From NCBI GenBank assembly GCA_002269645.1, contig NIVC01000236.1, positions 124,001 through 188,000 on the forward strand: DNA of 64,000 bases, given 5' to 3'. This document shows positions 13,101 through 39,281 of the stretch, one piece after another. Positions within the stretch are counted from its first letter, which is position 1. The number at the start of each line of letters is the position of its first letter. Origin of the DNA: Macrostomum lignano (lineage: Eukaryota). The notes under the pieces are model-generated. The model saw nothing but the letters and a program-made list of their open reading frames with translations. It had not been told where the DNA came from and made no database searches. Position numbers and translations under genes: made by a program.

Positions 13101-16100
13101 GCGGGCTTGTGATGGCGACCCGCTAGTGACTAAGCTAATAGCTGTCCCCCCTGTCCATCGCATTCCCCAGTACCGGGATTCCAACCCGGGCAAGCGGCTG
13201 CCGCAGATCGTGGGCCTGACCGCCAGTCCCGGCACCGGCCAAGCCTGCAAGCTCCAGGAGGCCACCGAGCACGTGCTGAAAATCTGCGCCAACCTGGACT
13301 GTCAGGAGCTCTGCACGGTGCGGCAGCATCTCCCCAGCCTGCGCACCAGCGTCTTCGACCCCAAGGACGAAATGCACTGGGCCCCCGCCAAGCCCTTCCA
13401 CGACTCCCTGCTGGGCGAGCTGGACCGCCTGATGCAGCGAGCGGAGGACCTGCTAGCCCATGAGGCCAAGCGATTCGAGTTTCTCATTCCGAGACCGCCT
13501 TCGGCTCGGGGCAGCTTCATTTACACCAACTACACTGGCATGCTGCACAAGATGCTCAAGGAGGAGACTCGGGAGCAGCCGTCCTGCATGCTGCACGCGG
13601 CCTGGAAGCACCTGCTGCGGTACAACTTTGCCCATCTCATCTGCAGCTTGTTCAGGTGCGCCGCTTGCATGTGCTGTGGGACGGTTACAGCTGGGGAGAG
13701 TCGGCGGGGAGGCTGGTAGGGTAGTGGGGAGGCTGATATGATAGGGTGGGTAGGGAGGCTAATAGGGTAGGTGAAGAGGCTAATGGGGTGGGTGAAGAGG
13801 CTAATATGGTGTGTGGGGAGGCTGATAGGGTGTGTGGGGAGCCTGATTGGATGGGTGGGGAGGCTGATACTTTGGTGGGGAGGCTGATAGGATGGGTTGG
13901 GTAGGGAGGCTGATAGGGTGGTGGGGAGGCTGATAGGGTGGTGGGGAGGCTGATAGGGTGGTGGGGAGGCTGATAGGGTGGGTGGGGAGGCTGCTAGGAT
14001 GGGTGGGGAGGCTGATAGGATGGGTGGGGAGGCTGATAGGGTGGGTGGGGAGGCTGATAGGATGGGTGGGGAGGCTGATAGGGTGGGTGGGGAGGCTGAT
14101 AGGATGGGTGGGGAGGCTGATAGGGTAGGTGGGGAGGCTGATAGGGTAGGTGGGGAGGCTGATAGGGTGGGAGGGGAGGCTGATAGGGTAGGTGGGGAGG
14201 CTGATAGGGTGGGTGGGGAGGCTGATAGGGTGGGTTGAGAGGCTGATAAATAGCGCCAATAGGTTTAATAGTGCAACAAGCCCTCTGGTTCCTTCCTATC
14301 CCGCAGGTCTGTGGACGCCCTTCGCTACCTCCGGGACGAGCTGGACCCGGAGTGTGGCCAGCCCACCTGCCGGCTGGACCGGGATCTGCGGGACGACCTT
14401 CGCAGCGCCCTGCCGAAAATGGACGCGTTCTGCCGGGAGCAGCCCGAGGCCGCAGGTTCGAGTCCCGCTCTGAAAATCTTGGCCGAAATCCTTCGCGGTC
14501 AGTTTGGCCAGAACGGGGACTCGCGGGTGATCATCTTTGTGCAGCAGCGCTGCTTCACCCGCTCCATCAAGGACTTCTTGGACAGCAGCCAGCCCGAGCT
14601 TGCCAACGCCGGGGTCAGGGCCGCCGTCATGACCGGTGCGAACGCCTGTGGCGCCGTTGGCGGCATCACGCAGAATGCGCAGACCGACACGCTGGCCGAC
14701 TTTAGGCGGGGCGTGGCTAAGGTGGGGATTTGAGGGATTGTGGGTGGGATTCGGGTGGTTGTTGGGTTATTCTAAGTATATGCTCAGGAGAGTTAGCCCA
14801 GAGCCCACCTGAATTATTATTATTATTATTACTATTATTATTATTATTATTATGAAACCCCGCAGATTCTCATCAGCACGAGCGTCAGCGAGGAGGGCCT
14901 GGACGTGCAAAAGTGCAACATGGTTGTTCGCTTCTGCCACGTCACCAACGAAATCGCCATGGTGCAGTCGAAGGGCCGCGGCCGGGCCGAGGGCAGCACG
15001 TATCACGTGATTGTGCCCGAGCAGCTGGGCTGGCTGTCCGACAAGGAGAAGACAAACAGGATGCGGGATGAGATGATGCAGGAGGCTGTGCTGCGGCTGA
15101 GCAAGATGGAGCAGCTGGAGTTCCAGGCCAAGGTGCTGCTCTGGTCTCTGTGCTCGTTTGGCTTTGTAGATATGCTTGCGTGTTGTGAGGCTGCTAGCGT
15201 CTTTGATGATTTTTATGGGTTCGAAATTTATCCTTTCTGTCTTTGATAATGTTAATGAGTCTTTGAGGATGTTAATCTGTCTTTGAGGATGTTAATCTGT
15301 CTTTTAGGATGTTAATCTGTCTTTCAGGGTGTTAATCTGTCTTTGAGGGTGTTAAACTGTCTTTGAGGGTGTTAATGTGTGTGTCTTTGAGGATGCCAAT
15401 GTGTCTTTGAGGTTGTTAATCTGTCTTTGAGGATGTCAATGTGTCTTTGAGGATGTTAATCTGTCTTTGAGGGTGTGAATCTGTCTTTGAAGATGTTAAT
15501 CTGTCTTTGAGGATGTCAATGTGCCTTTGAGGTTGTTAAGATGTCTTTGAGGATGTTAATCTGTCTTTGAAGATGTTAATCTGTCTTTAAGGATGTTAAT
15601 CTGTCTTTCAGGGTGTTAATCCGTCTTTGAGGGTGTTAATGTGTCTTTGAGGATGTCAATGTGTCTTTGAGGTTGTTAATCTGTCTTAGAAGATGTCAAT
15701 CTGTCTTTGAGGATGTTAATGTGTCTTCGAGGGTGTTAATGTGTCTTTGAGGATGTTAATCTGTCTTTGAAGATGTTAATATGTCTTTGAGGATGTTAAT
15801 CTGTCTTTAAAGATGTTAATCTGTCTTTGAGGGTGTTAATCTGTCTTTGAGGGTGTTAATCTATCTTTGATGATGTTAGTGTGTCTTAGTATGTTAATGT
15901 GTCTTTGAGCACGTTACTCTGTCTTTGAGGATGTTCATGTCTTTAAGGATGTTACTGTGTCTATTTTGAATTTTGTATTGTGAGAGGCTGGTGTGTCTTT
16001 AGGCGCCTCAATGTGTCCCAATGTGTGCTAGCGTGTATGCGCCTTTAGAAACGCTGATTTCAGCTCTTGCGTCTTGACTCCCTCAGGTGCAGAAACTGCA

Positions 16101-16626
16101 GTCCGACCAGGCCTGCCTGCGCAAGATTCAGCAGATCCAGAAGGCTGCCGCTTCCGCGAGGGGTGCTGCTGCGCCTCGGGGTTCAACGCCGCGGCCCCAC
16201 TACAACCTGCAGTGCGTCGGCTGCAACACCCTCGCTTGCACTTCGCTGGACCTCCGCATGGCCGACAAGCATTTCGTGGTGCTGCGCGACTCCCTGCTGA
16301 CCGACGGCCGCGCTCGTCTGCAGCCAAGGCCGGGCGGCCCCGCCGAAGACCTGCTGAATTCGCAGATGGTCTGCGCCAAGTGCCAGAAGCTGTGGGGCGG
16401 CCTGCGCAAGTTCAAGGACCTGGTGTTCCCCTGGCTGAAGGTGGAGCCGTTCAAGTTCGTCAACTCCTCCACTGGGGTGTCTGCCTTCGGAGTGAAGAAG
16501 TGGGCGGACACGAGCAAGTACTTCGGCACGCCCGAGCTTAGCAACAAGGAAATGCTCGACAAGGCGGAGAGCCTGCCTGAGGAGCTGTACATGCAGCTGC
16601 TGGCCGGCTCAGCGCCCGAGGAGTAG
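7163..16626 (+). CDS. RIG-I-like receptor (DDX58/IFIH1 family DExD/H helicase), about 1055 aa, with CARD-like N-terminus and Zn-binding C-terminal domain
   Basis: Phase-consistent GT-AG exons 7163-7301, 8380-8541, 9636-9857, 10494-10685, 11400-11830, 12264-12578, 13171-13655, 14307-14721, 14866-15132, 16087-16626 (3168 nt, divisible by 3). Motifs: Q motif RAYQLE, Walker A APTGSGKT, DECHH, GLTASPG, IIFVQQR, STSVSEEGLDV, MVQSKGRGRA. CTD carries CVGC...CAKC. The exon 4 acceptor could alternatively lie at 10547. Confidence 0.92.
7331..8330. repeat. 39-bp minisatellite (37-bp variants) in RLR intron 1
   Basis: Tandem ggtagcagcagctctctgaatcactgtggcattggggag. Confidence 0.95.
8660..9610. repeat. 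33-bp minisatellite in RLR intron 2
   Basis: Tandem ggacatacaaagacggattggtgagatacggta with variants. Confidence 0.95.
9910..10340. repeat. Degenerate pyrimidine-rich repeat of about 14 bp in RLR intron 3
   Basis: Recurring cccatctctccgat/aat units. Confidence 0.8.
10745..10940. repeat. 30-bp minisatellite in RLR intron 4
   Basis: Tandem tacatgctttaggtaatgtttgggttagaa. Confidence 0.85.
13715..14247. repeat. 21-bp G-rich minisatellite in RLR intron 7
   Basis: Tandem gggaggctgatagggtgggtg. Confidence 0.95.
15245..15960. repeat. 20-bp minisatellite in RLR intron 9
   Basis: Tandem ctgtctttgaggatgttaat with variants. Confidence 0.95.
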
Positions 16627-18870: not shown

Positions 18871-19177
18871 GCTGCACATCGCTGACAACTAATTAGGAGC
18901 CCTAAGAGCTATGAGCATCCGTCTCGAACTGGCTACAGTTCAACCAAAGTAATTAACACTAACTGTGAGAATCCGGCTGGAAACCTTTTAAATATTTGTT
19001 TTATTGTATATTTTAGTTAACACAAGATTAGTGTAGCCATGAGACAGCAGGTGGCAAAGCAGTGTTGAAAAAATAAACTGTTGCTTGTTGCATCTGTCAT
19101 ACTGAATGAAGCCTGCAGTTCGTTAGTAGCTAATTGGACTGGACATCCGGTTCAGCAGTGCCCCACCCTTCTGCACC

Positions 19178-20145
19178 CTACTTCCGCCGTCTGTGCGACA
19201 GCACGCCCGCTCCGACGCGGCGGCAGTGGGCGGTGAACTCCTCCGGGGTGATGAACATCGGTGGGCAGGCGGCCCGGGTGCAGGCGGCGCTGCGGTCCGG
19301 CAGGCAGAAGCAGCGGTTGCAGCCGTCAAAGAAGGCCAGTTCGGCGGTGCGCCGGCCCCTGCACAGGCTGTCGGCGTCCAGGCAGGTCGTGTAGAAGCGC
19401 GACCGGTCCTTCTTCTCCTGGAAGCGGCGCTGCGCCTCCCGGCAGTAGAGAGCGGCGGCCTCGTTGTCGGGCTCCGGCTGCGGGCACTCGCGGCTGTCGG
19501 CCACGCGGGCCAGGCCGTCCGACACGCAGGTGACGTTCCGACAGCCGTCGTTGTACTGGAAGCCCGGCAGGAACTCCTCGCAGATGCGGCTGTGCCGCAG
19601 CGCCGGGCACTCGAACTCGTCCTCCTCGAGCGCGCCGGCTCGCGGCTCCTCCGACTGCTGCTTTCCGAGCCCTCCGACTCCAACGCCAATGCCACGAAGC
19701 GGCAGTACGGGCCGGTCGGGTCGGTCACCGGGCATTCCATGCGGGTCCTGGCGTGGCCGCCGGCCGCCAGACAGCGGACCCGGTTGCAGCCGTCGCTGAA
19801 GGCGAAGCCGGCGCCGCGGCGGGTACAGACGGAGTCGGCATCGATGTTGTAGCAAGTGAAGGGGCCGAGGCGGCTCCAGACGGCGCGGGAGAGGCTCTCG
19901 CAGAGGTTCCGCTCGCCCCGGCTGCTGGGCTCCGGGCAGGCCAGGAGGGTGGTGCTCGCCAGACCGCCCTCGTTGCAGGTGACGGTGTTGCAGCCATCGT
20001 TGTAGCTGAAGACGGACTCCGCGGCGTTGCAGACGAGTCCGGGATCGAGGTCCGGACAGCGCAGGGCTGGCTCATCCTGCTCAGCCTGACTGCTCGAAAC
20101 GGCAGTGCACAGCAGGCCCACCGTGATGAGGAAGAGAAGCTGCAT
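19178..20145 (-). CDS. Secreted Cys-rich protein with 4 pacifastin-like modules (paralog 1); one-base frameshift near 19662-19664
   Basis: Signal peptide MQLLFLITVGLLCTAVSSS. Modules CNTVTC..TTLLACP and CNRVRC..RTRMECP lie in one frame; CRNVTC..ADSRECP and the canonical DGCNRCFC..ACTRAACP lie in the -1 frame, ending at the stop at 19178. No intron is evident. Confidence 0.8.
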
Positions 20146-21282
20146 AGTTTTCGTTTATCCCAGTAGTCTCTTAGAAAAGCTGAATTGATATTTTGCAGAG
20201 GAAAAAGCATCAGCTTTTCAAGTCTTTTATGCCAACGAAGCGGACCGTTCGAAGAGTAAAATGGCAGTTTGAACTTCCGTTTTCTGACATTTAGCATTTC
20301 AAAGCTGATTGCTGATAATTGCCGACATAATTGGCAGTGCGAACCGGTTGCTGGGCGAACCTTTCTACCCTTTCAAGCCCCGCCAGCTCAGGCTGAACTG
20401 GCACTGACGGGGCTCCTGACTCATCAATTCTCCAGTTTTGGTGGTCAGCTGCCGCTGCATTGGCCAGATCCGCAGACTGACCGATGGCCGCGCAGCTCAC
20501 AAATGCCCAGCCCAGTGAGAAAGCGCCAACTCGGGCAACAGGCCCAGTTTCGTGTTGACTGTGCGAAATGTTTTATTCTATTTCATTCAGCGCAAATAAA
20601 GCGGTTGATGCCGAGGTCAAAACGATTGCGGCCAGGCCCTGGCTTAGCGACAAACGCGGTTGGTCCCTTTGTCAGCCCCGCCCCCGGTCTGCCCAGCTCT
20701 GCAATCAAGCGCTGGGCCAGAGCCCGGACCGCAAGGAAATACTGAGCTACAAGTCCTGGCCTAAAAACGCGATGGGATGACGTGTCGCATGTACACAGGG
20801 ATAGCGGCATTGGGAATAATCAACAAATTGGAAAATAAGATTACGTATTGATCAAGTCTACACCAGCATTATCGAGGTTCTATCGGTAATGAAATCGGGG
20901 TTAATGAGAGGGAAAGAGATGCATCAACAGAGATCGGAGGCCGCATGCAGAATGTATAAAGCGAGTACTAGCAAAGTAAGTAACGCGGAGTTTTTAAGAA
21001 ATGACGCCCCCCGCAGCGCTTGCACGAGAAAAGTTTACAAGTTTTACTTCTACAGCCCATCACAAGGTCAGCGAGACGCTTCCAGCCACCGGCCAACCCC
21101 CCAAAAATCATTGTCATTTGCCAAGCCGCGAGCGCAACTGAAACCTTTCCCAGTCACCCGTGAAAATTCTAAAAACAACAGCAAATCTTTGTGGAAACGC
21201 CTCGAGTCTCGTATAACATTGATGTGCGGCTTCGCTGATGGTTGGTCAAGGCACAGGTACGTGAACGAAATCGGCAGGGTCT

Positions 21283-22410
21283 CTAGTTGATGATGCCGGC
21301 CTTGCGCCGCACGCACTCTGCCCTGAACTCCTCCTCAGTGCTGAAGTAGGGCTGACAAGCCCGCCGGGTGCAGCCTGCCCGATTGACGCCCATGCAGAAG
21401 CAATAGTTGCAGCCGTCGAAGAACGATTTCCGCTCCCCGGGCTGCTTGCAGACGTCCGCAGCCGTCAGGCAGCTCGTGCGCCGCTTTGACTCGCGGCGCT
21501 TCGCCTCCATGGCCGTCTTGGCGTCGCTGCACCTGCGGGCGGCCTCCGCCTCGCTGCCCACCCGACAGAGGCGGGTGGTGCTGACACCACGGCCCGGCGA
21601 GGAGCAGTGCACTTCGTTGCATCCGTCGTTGTAGCGAAAGCCGTTCATCTCATTCGTGCAGATTCGCGACATGGCCAGCTCCGGACAGTCGAGGTCCTGG
21701 TTGCCCTCAGGAGCAGTTCGGCGGGCTTTGCTGACCACCCACTGGCAGAGGGCGCTCTCGGAACTGGCTGGCGGGCAGCCCATGAGCGTGCTGGTCCACA
21801 TGCCGCTCTCTCCGCACTCGATCGTGTTGCAGCCGTCGCTGAATCGGTACCCGATGCCCTCCATCCGGCAGACCTCCGTCTTGTTGATCCCCGAGCAGGT
21901 CCGCGGCTCCATCCGTTCGACCAGGCGCTCCATGCGCCGCTCGCACCTGGCGATCTGGGTAGGGTCTCCCGGCGACGGGCAGAACATCAACGTGGACGTG
22001 CCGCTGCCGTTGCCGTCGCAGACCACCGGGTTGCAGCCGTCGCTGTAAGTGAAGCCGGCACCGGCGGTGGCGCAGACGGCCTGCATGGACAGCGCCGGGC
22101 AGGTCACCCTGTCCGCATCGTCCAGTCGCAGCTGTATGTTCTCACGGATCGTCTGGCAGCGCTGTCGCTCCTCGGCTGTGGCGGCCGGCGGGCAGGCCAT
22201 CAGCGTGGAGACCAGCGAGCCGCTACCGTCGCAGGTCACCGTGTTGCAGCCGTCATTGAAGCTGAAATCGGCTGGCGCGAGCTTGCAGATCGACTGCTGC
22301 CAGCTGTAGCCGCAGCCGATGCCGTCGGACGAGTCTTCCTGGGATTTGGCGATCAGCGGAGCCGCTGTGGCCAAGAATAGGGCAATGAGCAGTCGGCAGG
22401 GATGCTGCAT
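21283..22410 (-). CDS. Secreted Cys-rich protein with 5 pacifastin-like modules (paralog 2), 375 aa, single exon
   Basis: Intact ORF with signal peptide MQHPCRLLIALFLATAAPLIAKS. Four DGCNx(V/I)xC..STxxxC modules precede a canonical DGCNYCFC..GCTRRAC module. Confidence 0.88.
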   Translation of the reverse strand: MQHPCRLLIALFLATAAPLIAKSQEDSSDGIGCGYSWQQSICKLAPADFSFNDGCNTVTCDGSGSLVSTLMACPPAATAEERQRCQTIRENIQLRLDDADRVTCPALSMQAVCATAGAGFTYSDGCNPVVCDGNGSGTSTLMFCPSPGDPTQIARCERRMERLVERMEPRTCSGINKTEVCRMEGIGYRFSDGCNTIECGESGMWTSTLMGCPPASSESALCQWVVSKARRTAPEGNQDLDCPELAMSRICTNEMNGFRYNDGCNEVHCSSPGRGVSTTRLCRVGSEAEAARRCSDAKTAMEAKRRESKRRTSCLTAADVCKQPGERKSFFDGCNYCFCMGVNRAGCTRRACQPYFSTEEEFRAECVRRKAGIIN

Positions 22411-26589: not shown

Positions 26590-27142
<553 letters not shown>

Positions 27143-27455
27143 GAGGCAAAGGCTAATAAATATTGTAATTTTTCTCAGGCTTAACCGGGTAAGACTGGCA
27201 GCAGTCGCTGAATCCTGTTGGACAGCTGCCGCTAGAATGGGATCCAGTTGCGAGGCTCATTAAAAATATTTATTAAAAACACTTCTACTTTCAAAGTAAA
27301 ATAGCAAACAGGTTACGTTCGCGGTTCTGAGTCAACAAATAAATATGAGCGTAGAACTGCCACCAGTCTGCAGTCTTGAGTACAGGAAAATATAATGAAT
27401 TGCAAAAGTTACAGAAATAGCATTAGAGAGGCGGCCTTGGCGGTGCCGACGCGCC

Positions 27456-30400
27456 TCAGAGCTCGCAGACGACGCTGCCCTCGGCATCGTCCTCCACCGA
27501 GTCCTCAATAAATGCTCGATTCGTCGCGCCCTCCTCGATGACCACGGCGATCGCCGTATCGTCGCAGAATGACAGCACCTTCTTCTTGGCGTTGGTGGAC
27601 CCGTTGGTGCCGGCGCTGCGGCTGAGGATCGACTTCCGCGCCGCGGTGCCGTTGCTGCGCTGCGCCGGTCCCAGCGCCGACATCTCCAGAGACTCGCTGG
27701 ACATAAAGATGCGAAACGGCGCCGCCTCGGAGCCGCTGCCGGTCAGCCGCGCTTTCTGCAGGCTGCGCGGCAGCAGCTTCTGCGCCTCCGTGGCGGCCGG
27801 CCGCGTTGATGGCAGCGGCGGCGTCGGCGGCCGGACCTCGTCGACGACTGTGACAGTGACGCGATCTGGCGAGGCCGCCGCCGCCGCCGCCGCCGATTCG
27901 TCGGAGTCTCTGGCAGCGGCGTGCAGGCGATAGCGGCGGCTGCCCAGGGCGGGGGCGGGTGGCGGCGAGCGGGCCGTGCCTCGGAGGCGCTGCGCCCCCC
28001 AGGACGGGTTCGCCTCCTCGTCGGAGCCCGCGTCGGCATCCGCGTCGCCATCCGCTTCGACGTCAGACGGGATCAGCGCGTCCCCAGCCTCCAAGAGCAT
28101 GGAATCCTCAGCCTCATCGCTGACGCTCGAGATGCAGTAGGTGGTAACGAATTTGCCGTCCTGTGGGTGGGGAGGGGGGCAGCTCGGTGAGCCTGCGGTG
28201 TCCCCACTGTGACGTCACGCCATTTGCCACCTGTTTTATAATTCTTGTTGTCTGTCTTCTCATCTAATCTTTTCTTAATTGATGACGATTGCGAATCCGA
28301 CTTTTTCTCGCGAATTTCACGTTTCTGGAATTCGCCTCGCTAAGCCCAGCTCCTCCACCACGCCATTGTTCGGATAAAAGTCCTCTCTCTCCCCCCCCTC
28401 TCTCCCTCTCTCCCTCTCTCCCTGCGCACTGCCATGCGCATTTTTTTCATAATGGAGTGGGCGCCCCACTAGGGACTGAATTTTATAATCCGGAGTCTGG
28501 CCAGCCATGCCAACCCCAGCCTGTGCTGCATCTGTCGGGGCCAAAATTACCCCAAATTAATTTGCAGGTCTAATTACATATCTCTGAGACTCGCTGACGT
28601 GAAATTCGATTACAGCCGGCCGCCCCTCCCGCCATTCTGCTCCGGCAATCGATCAGGAGCTGCTGCCGGGCCTGCCGGACTCAAATATTGACACCGCAGC
28701 GCCCGCCACCAACTCAAGTGAGGGCTGGGGACGGGCCGCAGTGCAGTGAAACAAAAGGCGAGCCCGCCTGGGAGCATTGAGGGATTCTAAAATCGATAGA
28801 TGCTTATTTGAAGGATAAGGCAGCCCTCTAATTATAGTCTTACTGGAAGCATTGCCCAGAAATTTTCGACAATTTAAAGATGACCATCTTTTCCCTAAAT
28901 AGGATTTTATCCAAGTAAAGTAGGGAAATTACCAGCCTACTCACAGGTGCAACTCTGAGCTGGCCTCACCTGCCCAACCGTCAATTGCGCATTCTGCAAG
29001 CCTAATTAATCACTGGGTAGAACAATTCTGCTCTTTGGAAGTTGAGCATTTTGCTCTGAAGACAGTTCCGTCATTATCCTGATTGATGGGGGGAGCTGGC
29101 TTTGAAGTGGACTCGGTAGAGCTATTAATAAAAACTCAGGCGGATGCCTGCTGCTTCAAGCCACATTAGAAACATAGCAGGTGTCAGCACCGGCCACCAA
29201 TGCCTCAGCGACCTCGAATTTGCACTCACCGAAGCCGGGCAGAGTCGCTTCTCAAAGTGGAACTTTTGCTGCTCCTTTTTCTTTTTCTTTTTCTTTTTCT
29301 TTTTCTTTTTCTTCCTGTTGCTGCGTTTTTCGCCGGCTGCCTCCAAGCCCGGCGGTGGCGAGGTGCCCGAAGCTGCCGCTGCCGCCGTTGCCGCCGCCGT
29401 GGCTGCCGCATTCGCAGCCGCCGCAGCGGTTGCCGCCGCTGCCGCCGCCACCTTCGCCGCTGCGGTGGCGGACTTTGGCTCCGGCTGTGGAATCGGGGGC
29501 TGAGCTTCTGCCTGATCCGCCGTGGCACTCTCGGCGGCTTCCCCGTCGGCTCCGTTGCCCATTTCCTGCGCCGCCCCCTCAGCTGCCTCCATCGCCGCCT
29601 CCACCTTCGCAGCCTCGTCGGTTGGCTGCTCTGGCTCTGATGGCGCTGCAGTCTCCGGCTCTTCGTTCTCCTCAGTTTCGCCCGCGAGGGCCCGCCGCAC
29701 CGTCTCGGACGCGTGCACCTGGTGCTTCTCGGCGCTCAGCGCCAGCTGCAGGGCCACATGGAGCGCGCCGCCGCCAGCGAAGAGCGCCGGGACGCCGGAA
29801 GTGATGACGCCGATGGACACTGGGCCGCAGTGCAGCCCTGCACAGGCGGCCATCGGTGGTGACGCTACACCGCCGCCATTGCCGCAGTCGGCGTCGTCAT
29901 TGACATGGACTCCGCCGCATCGCACTAGGCGGATTAGGTGCTCAGCCAGGCGCAGCAGATCGCGGACGCTGCGTCGAGAGGACTTTCGCCGCAGGCCGCA
30001 TAGGAACAGGAAGAGGTCGCCGAACGCGTGGCGCATGTGGACGTCCCTGTAGCTGGCGGCGATGCTGTTGAATACGTGGTAGTGGGCGTTGGAGACGGCG
30101 TTCACCTCAAAGGGCCGTTTGACGTCGCTAAGGCAGGCCAGGCCATCCAGGCGCACGAAGAGCACCCCGGCCAGCCGCTTGTACTCTGGCTGGAACGGCT
30201 GGTCGTTGAGCAATCGGCTGGCGTAGAACTCGGGCAGGTTGGAGCGGATCATGGCCTGGTAGGAGTCTCGCTGCTCCTCCATGGCCGAGTTTAATGCCAG
30301 CATCTCGTTCTCCAGCAGCAGGTGCTCGGACTCCAGGCTGTCAAACATGCTCTGCATCATGTTCTTGCGTCTGGGGAAGCACTTCTTGACCAGCTTGGTG

Positions 30401-33400
30401 AGGTTCTCGGCGCTGGGCCGGACCCTGGGATCGTCGCTCCAGGAGGTTTCCAGCACCTGGCGGAAGGTGATGGGGATGTCCTGAAGCTGGTCAGGCCGCA
30501 GCGAGTTCTTCACAATGGCCGTGAGCAGGTCCCGGGCGTTGCTCAGGTCCTCCCTGTAGCTGGCGAAGGGAATGCTCCGGGTGAAGATCTCGTAGAAGAT
30601 CACAGCGCAGGAGTAAATGTCGGAGCTCTGGTCCGGCGGCCACTGCAGCTCGGAGCGGAGGATCTCGGGTGCAACATAGATGTCGAAGTCCAGGACCTGC
30701 TGCTCGCTGGGATACTCGCCCAGTATGGCGTCGCGGACGTACTGGATGGCCGGCCGGGCGTCTTTGACGGCCCGGGTGGTGGTTGAATAGTACATGAGGT
30801 ACTCCCAGTCCGCTAGCTTCACCGTCCACTTGCTGTCCATGAGGCAGGCGCTGGTCCGCAGCATGCCGTGCACGATGCCCTGGCTGTGCAGGTAGCTGAC
30901 AGCCTGGCAGATGTCCATCACTATGGAGCCTTTGACCGCGGGCGCCAGATCCAGCTTGGGGTTGTGCACAACCTTGCTGAGCGGGCCGCGCTCGCAGTAC
31001 TCTGACACAACAAAGAAGTCCCGCTCGACCTGGGTCAGGCCGTGGAACGCTGCCACGTTGTTGTGGTGGACGCGGTCCATCATCCACTGCAGCAGCTTCT
31101 TAGTGGAGATGTCGAGCCTCTCTTGCGATCGCTGCGTCTGCAGCAGTCGCACGCCGACGCTGGCCTCCCGGAACTTGCCCGGCCACTGCAGCACCGTGTC
31201 CGCGTCGTAATCCTCCTCGCTCTCCGCTTCATCCTCCGTCATCTGCGTGCCGACGGAGATCGTGTCGGAATCGTCCATGCGGAAGCTGCGCATTGATCGG
31301 TTGCGGCCGCGGCTGCGCGGAGCGAAGAACATGATCTCCTCGATCGGCACCAGCCACAGGTCCTGCGGAGGGGGAGGGGGAGGAGGGGGAGAGTTGCTGT
31401 CTGGCACCTGCGCGACTTTTTGATGCAGAAGCAAGTATCAACTGCCTTTGGGGCGTGCCCCACCTAACCAGCGGCTCATATGTTATACAAACTACTTTCA
31501 CTCTGCGTAAAGAGCCCAGCCCAAACCTCCTTGGTCTCTCCTGCTCCCTTGCTGTTGAGCTGTGAGCTGCTTTGCTGCCTGAAGGCTTGTCTAAAAACTA
31601 ACGGATTAACTCTCAGTGCCAGTCAAGAAAACCTGGATGGAAAATGAATGTAAAAATACAGTGTGTTGCTGAAGCTTCAGAACTGGCTCACCTGGTTGAG
31701 CAGCTTCCACTGCACGTAGTTCTGCCTGGCAATGTACGCCCCGAGGCCGCCGGCCACCAGCAGCCCGACGCCAACGGAGGCGAGCGTCGGCGCCATCCAG
31801 GACGAGTTCCGGCTCTCCGCTTCCGTCTGCTCGCGGCGCCGCTTCTCCAGCCAGAGCTCGCGCAGGAGCCGCCCACCGCAAGCGGCCTTGTCGAGCACCT
31901 GCGTCCGGACCTTCTGGTGGACAGCGTTGCTAAGCGGCACGAAATTGTTGGCGCGGATAATGCTGGCCGGCTCCGGGTCCGTGTAGAACCAGTTCAGGAA
32001 GCCATAGAACTCGGTGGCTTCATCGCACCTGGAGTTCGGGCGGAGTCCGGCTAGTGCTGAGTGCCCTATCTATTTAGTATCTTTCGGCTGTCTGAATTTT
32101 TGTTTTATAGCCCTCTCACATTAACCAGTCCTCTCTTGTCCACTCTACAGTCCCCTCTTGTCTACTCTACAGTCCACTCTATAGTCCTCTCTTGTCCACT
32201 CTACAGTCCTCTCTTGTCCACTCTACAGTCCACTCTACAGACCTCTCTTGTCCACTCTACAGTACTCTCTTGTCCACTCTACAGTCTTCTCTTGTCCTCT
32301 GGACAGTCCTCTCTTGTCCTCTCTACAGTCCTCTCTTGTCCACTCTACAGTCCTCTCTTGTCCACTCTACAGTCCACTCTACAGTCCTCTCTTGTCCACT
32401 CTACAGTCCTCTCTTGTCCACTCTACAGTCCTCTCTTGTCCACTCTACAGTCCTCTCTTGTCCACTCTACAGTCCTCTCTTGTCCACTCTACAGTCCACT
32501 CTACAGTCCTCTCTTGTCCACTCTACAGTCCTCTCTTGTCCACTCTACAGTCCACTCTACAGTCCTCTCTTGTCCACTCTACAGTCCTCTCTTGTCCACT
32601 CTACAGTCCACTCTACAGTACTCTCTTGTCCACTCTACAGTCCTTTCTTGTCCACTCTACAGTCCTCTCTTGTCCACTCTACAGTCCTCTCTTGTCCACT
32701 CTACAGTCCTTTCTTGTCCACTCTACTGTCCTCTCTTTGCCCCATCTACACGCATGTCGCTCTTGTGTCCTTTCTATATGCGAAACATGAAAAGCCTTGG
32801 CCTGCAATCAATTTAAATAATTTGTGCATATTTTATTGCTTTTAGCCTCGAAGCACTGCAATTATGAAAATTAAGCGTCGGGCTGTCCAATAGAACCAAT
32901 CCACGACATTAGAATGAAAGAATCAGCAGAGACTGCTTTTCCATTGTTATCAGACCTCACTCGCACAAAGGGCTGCTGAGTGAGGTCTGTTTGGTTAGTC
33001 AGTTTTAAGGTTCAGTTTTAAGAGGTTATCGCCCCGTGCAAATGCTGCAGCCGTCGACAGCTACATAACCCCACAGTGGATATGCAACGATTGAGAGGGA
33101 CTGGCCTTCATAAGCACACAGCATCATGTCCAATGTAGAGGCTTTAGTTCACATACGATCCCCATTGCGTCTGCTTATCCTCTGGGGCTGAATGAGACTT
33201 CTCAATGATTCTACTCTCATTGCCGGCCCAGTAGTCCTTGTTCTACTCTCATTGCCGGTCCAGTAGTCCTTTTTCTACTCTCATTGCCGGCCCAGTAGTC
33301 CTTGTTCTACTCTCATTGCCGGTCCAGTAGTCCTTGTTCTACTCTCATTGCCGGCCCAGTAGTCCTTGTTCTACTCTCATTGCCGGTCCAGTAGTCCTTG

Positions 33401-36400
33401 TTCTACTCTCATTGCCGGCCCAGTAGTCCTTGTTCTACTCTCATTGCCGGTCCAGTAGTCCTTGTTCTACTCTCATTGCCGGTCCAGTAGTCCTTGTTCT
33501 ACTCTCATTGCCGGTCCAGTAGTCCTTGTTCTACTCATTGCCTGTACAATAGTCCTTATTCTACTCATTGCCTGTACAATCGTCCTTATTCTACTCATTG
33601 CCTGTACAATCGTCCTTGTTCTACTCTCATTGACTGTACAATAGTCCTTATTCTACTCATTGCCTGTACAATCGTCCTTGTTCTACTCTCATTGACTGTA
33701 CAATAGTCCTTATTCTACTCATTGCCTGTACAATCATCCTTGTTCTACTCTCATTGACTGTACAATAGTCCTTATTCTACTCGTTACATGTGCAATAGTC
33801 CTAATTCTACTCATTGCCTGTACAATCGTGCTTGTTCTACTCTCATTGACTGTACAATAGTCCTTGTTCTACTCATTACATGTACAATAGTCCTTATTCT
33901 ACTCATTACATGTACAATAGTCCTAATTCTACTCATTGCCTGTACAATAGTCCTAATTCTACTCATTGCCTGTACAATCGTGCTTGTTCTACTCTCATTG
34001 ACTGTACAATAGTCCTTGTTCTACTCATTACATGTACAATAGTCCTAATTCTACTCATTACATGTACAATAGTCCTAATTCTACTCATTACATGTACAAT
34101 AGTCCTAATTCTACTCATTGCCTGTACAATAGTCCTAATTCTACTCATTGCCTGTACAATAGTCCTAATTCTACTCATTGCCTGTACAATAGTCCTTGCT
34201 GTTATCTAGGAAACAGACTTCCTGCTAGTATTTTCTAGGAAAAAACCCTGTAGCTGTGTGAACCCAGATCCTCTTTAAGCTTTGCTGCCTTTAGCTCTAA
34301 TCGACAAACAACTTAGGCTGCAGGAAACAATAGTGTTTATATAAAACAAGAGAAACCGTCCCATAAGACTCACCTCGCAGTCATGTTCATCTTGATGATG
34401 AAGTAGGTGTAGGTGGCGATTGGGTAGGCGTCCGGGTTCTGGGCGTCAATGAGGTGTCCAGTTAGCCGGGAGTCCATTGTGTTAGCGTAGAAGTCCATGG
34501 CCGCCTGCACGGAGGCCGGTTGCGAGGCGTCCACGAAGCTTCCGTTGGCGTTCTCAATCAGCGCGAGGCTCACGAGGCTCTCATCGTTCAGTCTGAGATC
34601 CGAGGCCGATATGTAGGCGATGGAGTTTCGCAGGCTGCTGAGCAGGGCGGTGAGCCCATCGGTACCCTGGGCGAAGAACTCAACAACTGAATTGTTCCAG
34701 TCCGGGTGTCTCCAGGTGACTTTGTTGAGCTCGCGCTCGAACTCGCCGTACTTGGCCTTCCACTCGGCTGAGAAGGAGCTCAGAGCTTGGGTGAAGACTG
34801 CGGTGGAGCCCGACTTGTCCATGCGAGCCATGGGCCGGACGGGGTTGTGGGGCAGACTCGAGTTCGGGTTCGCGTTAACAATGCCCGGGCTGTCCCAGTG
34901 CGAGGTCTTCCCCATGTAGATGTCGACCAGAGTCTGGCGGGTCAGGCGCAGCCGTGTTGCACCGAAGGACGGCGGGTGATAGGCCACCGCCACGGCGCTG
35001 TGGGAGTTCGTTGGCTTTCATTTAGCTTCTCAGCACCTCGAGGCCTCTCAACTGGCTATGTTCGGGTAAGCCTCACAAGGCTACTCAAGCCTCCCTGACA
35101 CACTCCAGGGCTACTCAAGCCCCCTGACACACTCCAGGGCTACTCAAGCGTCCCTGACACACTCCAGGGCTACTCAAGCCCCCTGACACACTCCAGGGCT
35201 ACTCAAGCGTCCCTGACACACTCCAGGGCTACTCAAGCGTCCCTGACACACTCCAGGGCTACTCAAGCCCCCTGACACACTCCAGGGCTACTCAAGCCTG
35301 TGTCACACCATATCTGTATCACACCATGCCTGTATCACACCATGCCTGCATCACACCATATCTGTATCACACCATGTCTGTATCACACCATGCCTGCATC
35401 ACGCCATGCCTGCATCACGCCATGCCTGTATCACGCCATGCCTGTATCACGCCATGCCTGTATCACGCCATGCCTGTATCACGCCATGCCTGTATCACGC
35501 CATGCCTGCATCACGCCATGTCTGTCTCCAGAGCGGCTTGTGAATGCAAAAGCAGACCTAGCGGTCGGTCCTTGCAACCAGTCCCGTGCATTGCAGTAGT
35601 CACGGGAGTTTCTCGAGAGTCTGTAGGCACGGATAAGCTGAGATCTCAGCAAACTGTAAACTCGTGCATAATTCAGCAAAAGTACACAATGAAAGCACAC
35701 ACACACACACACTCGCAAAAGGCATATCTGAGCAATTCATGCATCTGTAAATATTAGCATGGATCTTCTACACTAAGGCAGGCTATCGCTCTGACTGGTC
35801 TCGTACTTTAAATAGCGGCGATCGCTGGTCTCTACACTTGTCCTGCCGATGCTGGATGGCAATTTTTATTGTGAGGCTACTGTGAGGCGAGGGCAGGCCG
35901 GTTACTGCTGGCGGAATTAAACCCGTCACGGCCCATTAATTAATGAGTTGTTGCAGAGACTGGCGCGGCTGAGGGTGGCCATCAGGCCAGAGCTCAGGCA
36001 TACGGCCCAGCCTAATAGCGGCTCAGGGTTTCAGCTCAATTGGCTATTTGAACAGAGCTTACGGTGCCAAAGCTGGGGGCGGAGCGGAGGGCGGGAGGCG
36101 CTGTCATGAGCCAGCAGCCCCATGGCGGCGGAGCGGAGGGCGGGAGGCGCCGTCATGAGCCAGCAGCCCCATGGCGGCGGAGCGGAGGGCGGGAGGCACC
36201 GTCATGAGCCAGCAGCCCCATGGCGGCGGAGCGGAGGGCGGGAGGCGCCGTCATGAGCCAGCAGCCCCATGGCGGCGGAGCGGAGGGCGGGAGGCGCCGT
36301 CATGAGCCAGCAGCCCCATGGCGGCGGAGCGGAGGGCGGGAGGCGCCGTCATGAGCCAGCAGCCCCATGGCGGCGAAGCGGAGGGCGGGAGGCGCCGTCA

Positions 36401-39281
36401 TGAGCCAGCAGCCCCATGGCGGCGGAGCGGAGGGCGGGAGGCGCCGTCATGAGCCAGCAGGCCGTTGCTGAGGGCAAAACAATGAAGTGGAGAAAAAAGA
36501 CTCAGCAAGGTGGGCTGGAAAAAAACAAACTTTGTAGCAGCGGATCAGCGGCTAAGTTTCAATTAACAGAGTCCTCAGAGCTGCCGCTGACGTGGGAACT
36601 GCTGCATGGGCGGATCTCGACATACACAAGTTTCCTGTTTCGCTAAGAGTTAAAAAGTCAGCTCTGCTTTCTGTCAAAGTCTGATTCGCGATTCTGCCAA
36701 GCTTATTTCGGAAATCATTGTGAGCCGGTCGGGTGACAAATCTGTCCTAGTCTTAACTCTGACTTAGAGTGAGCGATGCGAGCTGTTTGATGAGCTGAGG
36801 GCTTTCATCTTTGTTGGAGTTCTCGAGCCCAACTGGCTTGCTTTGCCTGGCTATTCAATTACTGAACTGCCTGTCTGCCTACCTGCCTACCCACCTGCCT
36901 ACCCACCTGCCTACCCATCTGCCTACCCACCTATTCACCTGCCTACCCACCTGCCTACCCACCTGCCTACCCACCTGCCTACCCACCTGCCTACCCACCT
37001 GCCTACCTAACTACCTACCCACCTACCTACCTAACTACCTACCCACCTACCTACCCACCTACCTACCCACCTACCTACCCACCTACCTACCCACCTACCT
37101 ACCCACCTACCTACCCACCTACCTACCTACCCACCTACCTACCTACCCACCTACCTACCCACCTACCTACCCACCTACCTACCCACCTACCTACCCACCT
37201 ACCTACCTAACTACCTACCCACCTACCTACCTAACTACCTACCCACCTACCTAACTACCTACCCACCTACCAACCTACCTACCCACCTACCCACCCATCT
37301 ACCTACCCACCTATTTACGTGCCTACCTACCTACCTACCTACCTACCTACCTACCTATCTACCTACCGATCAACCTACCCAGTACCTACCCACCAATCTA
37401 CCCACCTAACTGCCTACCCACCAATTCACGCACCTACCCACCTATCTACCTATCCACTTACCCACGTACCTACCTAACTACCTACCTACCTACCCACCCA
37501 CATCTGACCTAAAAGTCACCAGTTCCTGCTTTCTTTATCAATCATATTCTCCACCCTTCATCGTTTTTCTGTCGTTATATAGATATTAATTTCCAGCCTC
37601 AGGACCACCAGAGACGAGTCCTTTTTCTGGATCAAATCCAATTTTCTGAAAAACAACTACAAACGGAACTAAAAAGAGACAGGCGCCACCTCAAGCTAGC
37701 AGAGCCGAGAGCTCACCCGCGGAAAAGTATGCTCAAGAAAAAACAACATGGCTTGTGGCCTGTTTTCAGGCTGAGATGGAGCAGCCCGCCTCTCCCTTCT
37801 CATTCTTCAATGTTGCTTTTACGAGCTAAAAAGCAGCCTAAAATCCCGCGCTGCTACTTCCAGATCCCGGCATGAAAGCAGCACTTTTGCCTGCTTTGGG
37901 TCTTAGACCTGCCCCTTTTGTTTTTGCAGCCACAGCACAAAAGTCAAAGTGGATTGCTTGCTCTGACGGGCTGCACCGGCACAATGAGTCAGTTTTGTAT
38001 ACTTTTATGCTTTTTATACAATCCGACCAAACACTGACTCGCGAGCCTGCAGCAGGATAGAACTGACAGAAAAGAAATCTTCAACAATATCTGCAGATAA
38101 AAACTTGTCACAGATTCCAATGAACTCTATGCGATAGATGGATTAGATCTGTAGACTAACAACAACAAAATGCTCAGACCAGCAATCCATTCTACTCCAG
38201 TGCATGTAGGCTAGACTAGCAATCCATTCTACTCCATTGCATTTAGGCTAGACTAGCAATCCATTCTACTCCAGTGCATTTAGGCTAGACTAGCAATCCA
38301 TTCTACTCCAGTGCATGTAGGCTAGACTAGCAATCCATTCTACTCCATTGCATTTAGGCTAGACTAGCAATCCATTCTACTCCATTGCATTTAGGCTAGA
38401 CTAGCAATCCATTCTACTCCAGTGCATTTAGGCTAGACTAGCAATCCATTCTACTCCAGTGCATTTAGGTTAGACTAGCAATCCATTCTACTCCATTGCA
38501 TTTAGGCTAGACTAGCAATCCATTCTACTCCAGTGCATTTAGGCTAGACTAGCAATCCATTCTACTCCATTGCATTTAGGCTAGACTAGCAATCCATTCT
38601 ACTCCAGTGCATTTAGGCTAGACTAGCAATCCATTCTACTCCAGTGCATTTAGGCTATACTAGCAATCCATTCTACTCCAGTGCATTTAGGCTAGACTAG
38701 CAATCCATTCTACTCCAGTGCATTTAGGCTAGACTAGCAATCCATTCTACTCCATTGCATTTAAGCTAGACTAGCAATCCATTCTACTCCAGTAGTGCTT
38801 GTAGGCTAGACTAGCAATCCATTCTACTCCAGTAGTGCTTGTAGGCTAGACTAGCAATCCATTCTACTCCAGTAGTGCTTGTTGGCTAGACTAGCAATCC
38901 CTCGCAGAGTCGCAGAGACAAGGTGGAGATCCCGCCAGGAGCTCACCCCGCCAGCGTGGGGAACATCTGGCTCTCCGGGTAGCTGCTGTACTCCGAGTCC
39001 TTCATGATGGAGTCGCTGCCGGCAAACAGCTGGTAGTCGGGGTCGGCCTGGTTGTTGTAGCCCCGCTGGAAATTGAGCCGGCCGGTGCCGCTGCCCACGC
39101 CCGAGTAAACGATGCTAACGTCCGCCCAGGCGCTGCGGTGCGCACTGTAGCGGTCGCAGACGGCGATGTACACATTCTGCGGGAAGGTCGCCCCGCTGCC
39201 GCGCACAGTGATGGCTTCGGCCGAGCCGGCGGCTATCACGGTTACCATGCCAACCATGTTCAACAGCACAGCGCCTGTCAT
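27456..39281 (-). CDS. Single-pass receptor of about 1377 aa: signal peptide - PstS-type phosphate-binding ectodomain - TM - kinase-homology domain - coiled coil - degenerate guanylyl cyclase domain - low-complexity tail
   Basis: Phase-consistent exons 39281-38947, 34997-34374, 32028-31692, 31362-29230, 28160-27456 (4134 nt). PstS motifs: [50 protein letters not shown]: [23 protein letters not shown]: [42 protein letters not shown]. Cyclase-like: LFVRLDG, FGD, GLHCGPV, FEKR...TY. Confidence 0.88.
32125..32735. repeat. 22-bp minisatellite (with 11-bp half units) in receptor intron 2
   Basis: Tandem cactctacagtcctctcttgtc. Confidence 0.95.
33205..34200. repeat. 32-bp minisatellite grading into a related 30-bp unit (receptor intron 2)
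   Basis: tctactctcattgccggcccagtagtccttgt, then tctactcattgcctgtacaatagtccttat. Confidence 0.93.
35080..35520. repeat. Adjacent 29/30-bp and 16-bp minisatellites (receptor intron 1)
   Basis: ctactcaagcccctgacacactccaggg-type units to about 35298, then catgcctgtatcacgc units. Confidence 0.9.
36075..36460. repeat. 49-bp GC-rich minisatellite (receptor intron 1)
   Basis: catggcggcggagcggagggcgggaggcgccgtcatgagccagcagccc, period 49 (36121, 36170...). Confidence 0.95.
36865..37500. repeat. (CCTA/CCCA)-derived microsatellite (receptor intron 1)
   Basis: cctacccaccta-type repeats. Confidence 0.93.
38178..38900. repeat. 37-bp minisatellite (receptor intron 1)
   Basis: Tandem ctagactagcaatccattctactccagtgcatttagg. 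Confidence 0.95.

Follow-up and report, generated by a model that had tools for sequence, protein, structure and literature searches.

A PstS-type, probably phosphate-binding head on a receptor of the guanylyl cyclase family in the flatworm Macrostomum lignano

Results

The gene and its exon joins

We have analysed a 64,000-nucleotide stretch of the Macrostomum lignano genome (assembly GCA_002269645.1, contig NIVC01000236.1, positions 124,001 to 188,000 of the forward strand; hereafter the window), in which a gene on the minus strand, at window positions 27456-39281, encodes a protein of 1377 amino acids (aa). This protein is made up, in this order, of a signal peptide, a complete fold of the bacterial phosphate-binding protein PstS, one transmembrane helix, a pseudokinase, the linker helix of receptor guanylyl cyclases (RGCs) and a class III cyclase-homology domain. 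A first-pass annotation of the window had proposed five phase-consistent exons and this domain order, and both are confirmed. The coding sequence of 4134 nt forms 1377 codons with no internal stop; the introns, of 3949, 2345, 329 and 1069 nt in order, are of the GT-AG type, all four donors reading G/GTGAG (a slash marks a splice or cleavage site) and the acceptors consisting of a pyrimidine-rich tract that ends in CAG/; and Pfam matches, hydropathy and alignments with PDB chains and human NPR1 give the domains in the order that the annotation had proposed. The exons and domains are the following:

38947-39281, minus strand: exon 1, aa 1-112 (phase-2 end, splitting the Gly112 codon); signal peptide and start of PstS, with ligand residues T32, F33, S64 and D90
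39213-39281, minus strand: signal peptide, aa 1-23, ending AEA/I (hydropathy)
34374-34997, minus strand: exon 2, aa 112-320; PstS core with the R170-x-D172-x-S174-G175-S176 phosphate loop and three sequons (Pfam PBP_like_2)
31692-32028, minus strand: exon 3, aa 320-432; last PstS helices with Cys321 and Cys370, stalk, transmembrane helix and start of the juxtamembrane segment
31725-31796, minus strand: transmembrane helix, aa 398-421 (hydropathy)
29230-31362, minus strand: exon 4; pseudokinase, linker helix, main part of the cyclase-like domain and low-complexity insert
30394-31167, minus strand: kinase-homology domain (pseudokinase), aa 498-755 (Pfam PK_Tyr_Ser-Thr; alignments with RIPK1 and NPR1)
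30172-30393, minus strand: linker or signalling helix, aa 756-829 (alignment with human NPR1 residues 783-830)
29677-30171, minus strand: class III cyclase-homology domain, main part, aa 830-994, catalytically degenerate (Pfam Guanylate_cyc and NPR1 alignment)
29263-29676, minus strand: low-complexity insert, in frame, aa 995-1132, rich in Glu and Ala and then with a run of 13 Lys
27456-28160, minus strand: exon 5; last strand of the cyclase-like domain, aa 1144-1160, then a tail of ~215 aa; stop codon at 27456-27458

The PstS domain is cut by two introns, within the codons of Gly112 and Arg320. At the exon 1/2 junction the translation (...FPTLA/G AVAVAY) is continuous with PstS (FPTVIGGVVLAV), and the alignment with bacterial PstS runs unbroken through the exon 1/2 and 2/3 junctions, as does the alignment with homologues through the exon 3/4 and 4/5 junctions. 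A 353-aa UniRef fragment of M. lignano (P0005) matches the model without a break and with 100% identity, starting midway through exon 2, taking in exon 3 and ending in exon 4. It thus crosses the exon 2/3 and 3/4 junctions and is independent confirmation that a single annotated product contains both the PstS exons and the kinase exon. The first-pass annotation had considered that PstS and kinase exons might turn out to be separate genes, which is contradicted both by this fragment and by homologues that are single proteins. One could still suppose that a secreted PstS gene and a kinase/cyclase gene, or a bacterial contaminant, have been misjoined in the model, and the exon 1/2 and 4/5 joins are indeed without support from Macrostomum transcripts; but the span of P0005, the unbroken PstS alignment, the animal flanking genes, and more than 10 other animal genera with the full architecture in one protein and the same intron position make such an artefact almost inconceivable. 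We regard it as practically certain that the locus is a real and intact gene with the architecture given above.

By hydropathy the protein is hydrophobic in just two places, aa 1-23 and aa 398-421, which gives it the type-I topology of the RGC family. Five N-glycosylation sequons are found in its ectodomain (N157 NSS, N213 NNS, N263 NGS, N316 NMT and N394 NSS), and the four listed beforehand (NSS, NNS, NGS and NMT) are all present among them. The 414-nt insert at 29263-29676, which lies within the cyclase-like domain and is missing from the homologues, encodes its 13 Lys by (AAGAAA)n; it may be translated or partly spliced out, or could be a recent microsatellite expansion. Exon 5 has no Pfam match, and its low-complexity tail of ~215 aa is probably disordered.

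The PstS head and its phosphate site

In a Pfam scan carried out exon by exon, PBP_like_2 matched exon 1 with 17.8 bits and exon 2 with 42.7 bits (cut-off 27). The best matches of the ectodomain among PDB sequences are the PstS proteins of Yersinia and E. coli, with E values of 4e-26 to 1e-24. Its structure was modelled with AlphaFold2 on a 42-sequence alignment, giving a mean predicted local distance difference test score (pLDDT) of 93.6 and a predicted template-modelling score (pTM) of 0.90. When this model was compared with the PDB by Foldseek, the top 44 matches were all phosphate-binding proteins, with target-normalised template-modelling scores of 0.87-0.90 against E. coli and Yersinia PstS, and binders of molybdate or tungstate (ModA type) scored far lower.

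E. coli PstS coordinates phosphate through T10, F11, S38, D56, R135, D137, S139, G140 and T141 (a numbering that we verified against the aligned chain), and its Asp56 discriminates protonated phosphate from sulfate. The equivalent residues in the Macrostomum protein are T32, F33, S64, D90, R170, D172, S174, G175 and S176; all nine positions are kept, and the sole change is the conservative replacement of Thr by Ser at the equivalent of T141. By its PDB matches, its modelled fold and this residue alignment, the complete PstS-like ectodomain claimed by the first-pass annotation is a genuine PstS whose phosphate pocket is intact. The nearest prokaryotic relative that was examined, 35% identical, sits in a phoB-phoR-pstS-pstC-pstA-pstB-phoU operon. 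Near the end of PstS, Cys321 and Cys370 are invariant in the animal family members aligned (10/10); a disulphide between them may hold the final helices together ahead of the stalk.

A pseudokinase followed by a degenerate cyclase

Exon 4 is matched by PK_Tyr_Ser-Thr with 88.7-90.8 bits. Its kinase domain carries HGML in place of HRDL, so that both the catalytic Asp and the Asn are missing, and VGVR in place of VAIK; it matches the kinase-homology domain of human NPR1 at 57.5 bits and was also aligned with RIPK1. These motifs mark it as the RGC-defining type of pseudokinase. The ~75 residues that follow it, where the first-pass annotation had put a coiled coil, align with the NPR1 linker helix (783-830), linker and cyclase-like region together being aligned with NPR1 783-1002, and Guanylate_cyc matches exon 4 with 25.7-26.9 bits (cut-off 21.9). 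An ANF_receptor ectodomain was matched neither in the exon-level nor in the full-length Pfam scans. That the cytoplasmic region is of the metazoan RGC type is borne out by the HGxL pseudokinase, by the NPR1 alignments and by the intracellular region of the Owenia homologue described below.

As regards the cyclase-like domain, the proposed class III fold stands, since it scores above the Pfam cut-off, but the domain is catalytically degenerate. Aligned with NPR1, the seven catalytic or GTP-specifying positions D, E, D, R, C, N and R read R, H, D, A, F, H and Q, which leaves one of the seven. The survivor is the second metal-binding Asp (GD motif); the first metal-binding Asp has become Arg, the guanine-specifying Glu and Cys have become His and Phe, the triphosphate Arg is now Ala, and the transition-state Asn and Arg are replaced by His and Gln. 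The domain is also split by the low-complexity insert of 138 aa. Because only one catalytic residue in seven is kept, the Macrostomum protein alone is not a cyclase, and from its residues a homodimer cannot be expected to synthesize cyclic GMP (cGMP). One may argue for a homodimer that makes cGMP upon phosphate binding from the class III fold, from the retained GD motif and from 11 related clusters with a fully canonical GTP-specific site. Yet six of the seven key residues are replaced, the insert interrupts the domain, and in the sub-branch to which Macrostomum belongs the cyclase-like domain is the fastest-evolving one, and we consider an active, phosphate-regulated guanylyl cyclase very improbable here. 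With six of seven catalytic or substrate residues lost, a scheme of phosphate in and cGMP out cannot hold for the Macrostomum homodimer; it may hold for catalytic relatives.

An old family in protostome animals

We scanned 1.84 billion representative proteins exhaustively with HMMER and obtained 181 matches below 1e-30, and local domain mapping found at least 89 clusters (50% identity) with a single PstS and a kinase-homology domain, most of them with a transmembrane helix and many with a cyclase. A word-indexed search for homologues with the family profile gave little but prokaryotic PstS; the animal members that bear a name were obtained from the exhaustive scan and three cluster look-ups, and the word-indexed search added none to them. 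The named members are from gastropods (Haliotis, with two paralogues, and Bulinus), a chiton (Liolophura), bivalves (Argopecten, Ostrea, Mercenaria and Mya), a nemertean (Tubulanus), an annelid (Owenia), a priapulid (Priapulus), a nematode (Trichinella) and a tardigrade (Paramacrobiotus), all of them labelled automatically, for example as 'atrial natriuretic peptide receptor-like' or 'retinal guanylyl cyclase 2-like'. The architecture of PstS, transmembrane helix, kinase and cyclase is carried in the same order by molluscs, annelid, nemertean, priapulid, Trichinella and tardigrade. The first-pass annotation had seen a PstS domain recruited as the head of an RGC-family receptor; an RGC-type receptor with a PstS head is what we find, although not as a one-off recruitment but as an old family of several phyla.

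The Macrostomum protein is 31-34% identical to those of Haliotis, Liolophura and Tubulanus over 96-100% of the length, and the alignment keeps the juxtamembrane motif NEW/DxWxIPIE (where the slash separates alternative residues) and the motif QWPGK. In abalone and chiton the first intron falls in the same Gly codon of FPTxA/G and in the same phase 2 as in Macrostomum, and the last one, in phase 0, lies at a place equivalent to that of Macrostomum intron 4, ahead of a TYW/C motif. Because these two intron positions are common to the three, the gene structure argues for common descent of the family. Many fragments called as open reading frames (ORFs) from unassembled animal contigs start at query residues 112-126, just past the first intron, which suggests that this intron is widespread in the family. 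As judged from these comparisons, the family is spiralian and ecdysozoan, a large and old branch of metazoan RGCs with a different head, and it seems to be missing from vertebrates.

Across the family clusters the phosphate loop is kept at R135 in 69/74, D137 in 62/74, S139 in 59/74, G140 in 61/74 and Thr or Ser at position 141 in 63/74. Among clusters that contain exon 1, and counting only those ungapped at the site, 15 of 17 retain S38, 15 of 16 retain D56, and 13 of 14 have Ser in place of T10; the tardigrade member has G at S38 and A at S139. From the pocket residues and the modelled fold, phosphate is probably the ligand of the ectodomain. The head might instead bind arsenate, sulfate, polyphosphate, a phosphorylated metabolite or a protein, or bind nothing and serve only a structural or dimerising role. 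These possibilities would fit the altered pocket of some members, the tardigrade among them, and the probably eukaryote-specific additions (five sequons and two invariant Cys), and the identity of the ligand does rest on inference; but all nine pocket positions are kept in Macrostomum, the counterpart of Asp56 included, the pocket is the best-conserved feature across phyla, and every close structural match is a phosphate binder, the ModA-type oxyanion binders lying far lower. We consider a ligand other than phosphate, or none, unlikely, while giving it more weight than any other alternative discussed here.

The cyclase site divides the family into two functional classes. All seven catalytic residues, with the Glu/Cys pair expected of a GTP-specific enzyme, are present in 11 representative clusters, including those of Owenia, Priapulus and Trichinella, and in the other clusters the site is degenerate to a varying degree; the Macrostomum gene falls among the degenerate proteins with a QWPGK motif, which are from molluscs and the nemertean. 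Between abalone and chiton, identity is 65% in the pseudokinase, 60% in the juxtamembrane segment, 48% in PstS and 27% in the cyclase-like domain. The cyclase-like domain is the least conserved folded domain in this comparison, which suggests that selection in the degenerate branch acts on the PstS head, juxtamembrane segment and pseudokinase. A protein of this kind might handle phosphate but have ceased to signal, as a membrane-anchored scavenger, as a decoy or clearance receptor like NPR-C, or as a gene decaying to a pseudogene, and the dead catalytic site, the fast-evolving cyclase-like domain and the long low-complexity tail are compatible with such a fate. We judge it improbable, though, since the frame of 1377 codons is intact over five exons, no other part of the cytoplasmic region is as well conserved as the juxtamembrane segment and the pseudokinase, and the persistence of a non-catalytic branch in flatworm, nemertean and mollusc argues for a retained cytoplasmic function.

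Look-alikes in protists and a giant virus

PstS heads on membrane receptors are common in eukaryotes, and examples were found in protists and in a giant virus:

Moumouvirus australiensis (P0233): PstS-kinase-cyclase, named 'serine/threonine protein kinase receptor'
Fabomonas tropica (P0256): two PstS domains, transmembrane helix, kinase and cyclase
Euglena gracilis (P0004): two PstS domains, transmembrane helix and cyclase
Chromosphaera perkinsii (P0135): four tandem PstS domains detected, with multiple membrane spans
Pigoraptor chileana (P0237): PstS, transmembrane helix and kinase
Palpitomonas proteins: PstS heads

Like the Macrostomum receptor, most of these proteins, from deep-branching protists and the virus, couple one or more PstS ectodomains through a membrane span to a kinase, a cyclase or both, the PstS domains of Chromosphaera being joined to a multi-span membrane region; but their PstS domains are often in tandem and their kinases apparently active. 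They suggest that eukaryotic PstS-based receptors are a broad and uncharacterised class, and because they are common in eukaryotes a direct transfer from prokaryote to animal need not be assumed. The PstS-kinase-cyclase proteins of protists and of the giant virus were considered as direct relatives of the animal family and were rejected, their cytoplasmic parts being far less similar to it than NPR1 is. The intracellular region of the Owenia member matches human NPR1 with 383 bits over a continuous stretch that includes the kinase-homology domain and the cyclase, as against 128 bits for Fabomonas and 121 bits for Moumouvirus. By this comparison, the protist and viral receptors were probably assembled separately.

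Neighbouring genes and intron content

The genes that flank the receptor are ordinary animal genes, namely those for the large subunit of ribonucleotide reductase, two pacifastin-type inhibitors and a RIG-I-like helicase, and no pstC, pstA or pstB gene is found in the 64-kb window. That the gene is domesticated in the animal genome, as the first-pass annotation had held, is supported by its introns, two of them at positions common with abalone and chiton, and by these neighbours. Bacterial contamination and recent horizontal transfer were also considered, and both are rejected in view of the introns, their conserved positions and the animal neighbours. The following features were noted along the window:

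12264-16626, plus strand: multi-exon RIG-I-like receptor gene, with a DECH-box helicase segment (ResIII/DEAD matches) and a RIG-I C-terminal regulatory domain (55 bits)
19123-22410, minus strand: two adjoining genes for secreted Cys-rich proteins, a 375-aa ORF with multiple pacifastin-type serine-protease-inhibitor repeats (73.7 bits) and a neighbouring 340-aa ORF whose pacifastin match is sub-threshold (20.9 bits against a cut-off of 27.9)
26590-27144: (AGAC)n array of 555 nt, just beyond the 3' end of the receptor gene
32126-34198, 35079-35525, 36074-37501 and 38176-38900: minisatellite arrays with periods of 8-92 nt, which make up most of the receptor-gene introns, e.g. a 37-nt unit repeated 19 times just 3' of exon 1 and a 30/92-nt array of ~1 kb
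51197-54825, minus strand: gene for the large subunit of ribonucleotide reductase over several exons, with ATP-cone, all-alpha and barrel domains (up to 251 bits)
56-60 kb: AT-rich stretch next to the ribonucleotide reductase gene (G+C content 31-34%, against ~52% elsewhere)

Discussion

We think it fairly probable that this locus encodes a type-I, single-pass receptor of the RGC family in which a PstS flytrap takes the place of the ANF ectodomain, and which would sense phosphate and have a non-catalytic or heterodimeric output. In the mechanism that we propose, extracellular orthophosphate would bind in the cleft between the two PstS lobes and the flytrap would close; the closure would then act, by way of the one transmembrane helix, on the conserved juxtamembrane segment, the pseudokinase and the linker. 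Members whose cyclase is intact (e.g. those of Owenia, Priapulus and Trichinella) would respond through cGMP. Since the Macrostomum cyclase domain has lost six of its seven catalytic residues, its output is most likely non-enzymatic, and the protein could pair with a catalytic RGC and regulate it within a heterodimer, or could be a scaffold made of pseudokinase and pseudocyclase; we put forward this specific output route only tentatively. It is similarly conceivable, at rather less than even odds, that PstS-headed RGCs as a family are direct orthophosphate receptors of protostomes, the catalytic members turning the phosphate level of the surroundings or of the body fluid into a cGMP signal and the pseudo-cyclase branch serving as a phosphate-binding regulatory subunit or scaffold.

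Several observations do not favour this interpretation. The Pfam scan of the full-length protein of 1377 aa gave no PBP_like_2 match. We take this for an artefact of filtering or bias, perhaps through the low-complexity regions, and it may be one reason for the generic 'ANP receptor-like' names in the databases; the PDB sequence and fold searches settle the identity of the head as PstS despite it. Conserved pocket residues are no proof of phosphate specificity, and arsenate or small phosphorylated ligands are possible. In a neighbour-joining tree of 95 PstS domains, which was meant to weigh a eukaryotic against a bacterial source of the animal head and has long branches, the Macrostomum domain stands apart from the other animal domains, a placement that is probably a long-branch effect. 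PstS is a monomeric flytrap, whose closure is presumed here to drive an RGC dimer, and the output step of the Macrostomum pseudo-cyclase is speculation.

The metazoan RGCs (NPR1/GC-A, GC-C, the retinal cyclases and the GCYs of C. elegans) share with the Macrostomum protein the type-I topology, the HGxL pseudokinase, the linker helix and the C-terminal class III cyclase fold, in the same order. They differ from it in their ectodomain, which is the class I ANF_receptor and not a class II PstS (PBP_like_2), and in the cyclase site, of which Macrostomum keeps one residue in seven. Compared with bacterial PstS, a subunit of the PstSCAB ABC transporter, the head has the same fold, the same nine phosphate-site residues and 25-36% identity. 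Unlike it, however, the head is neither a free periplasmic protein nor a lipoprotein, lacks PstC, PstA and PstB partners, is joined by a transmembrane helix to a signalling module, and bears sequons, spliceosomal introns and a conserved, apparently extra Cys pair.

The closest precedent is the NIT-domain guanylyl cyclases (NIT-GCs), which likewise are animal membrane guanylyl cyclases with a bacterial-type sensor of small anions. According to a genome-mining study of 2020, NIT-GCs are placozoan and bilaterian, widespread in invertebrates and absent from vertebrates (PMC7400543), and Platynereis NIT-GC1 is reported to have a conserved cyclase that is active by experiment (bioRxiv 10.1101/2023.08.02.551600). 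The PstS-type members are known here from sequence, and the sensors themselves are different, a four-helix bundle with nitrate, nitrite or nitric oxide as proposed ligands in one case and a flytrap with phosphate as proposed ligand in the other. The Venus kinase receptors and the trypanosome receptor adenylyl cyclases carry class I flytraps (of the LivJ or GABA-B type), have amino acid or unknown ligands, and possess active catalytic domains. Their overall design is nevertheless that of the Macrostomum receptor: the former (in schistosomes and insects) and the latter are reported to have the periplasmic-binding-protein flytrap outside, one transmembrane segment and the kinase or cyclase inside (PMC2680970, PMC6027212). 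Full-text searches of the literature, subscription-only papers excepted, gave no description of a guanylyl cyclase with a PstS or PBP_like_2 ectodomain, nor of a ligand other than phosphate for this architecture.

What would such receptors mean for the animals that carry them? Reviews describe mammalian phosphate sensing as unknown or poorly understood. The proteins of this family are already public, under misleading automatic names, vertebrates seem to lack them, and the Macrostomum copy is of the catalytically dead kind, which limits the value of the finding. The phosphate-binding module that is best understood is here wired, its pocket intact, to a classical signalling module of animals, and in this family it can readily be tested whether an animal receptor senses phosphate directly. 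It also indicates that RGC ectodomains are more interchangeable than in the textbook picture of the ANF receptor, and it offers, inside one receptor family, a natural series from active cyclase to pseudo-cyclase. If our interpretation is true, these receptors would be the second case, after the NIT-GCs, of a bacterial-type anion sensor in animal cGMP signalling, and would provide a molecularly defined phosphate sensor in animals.

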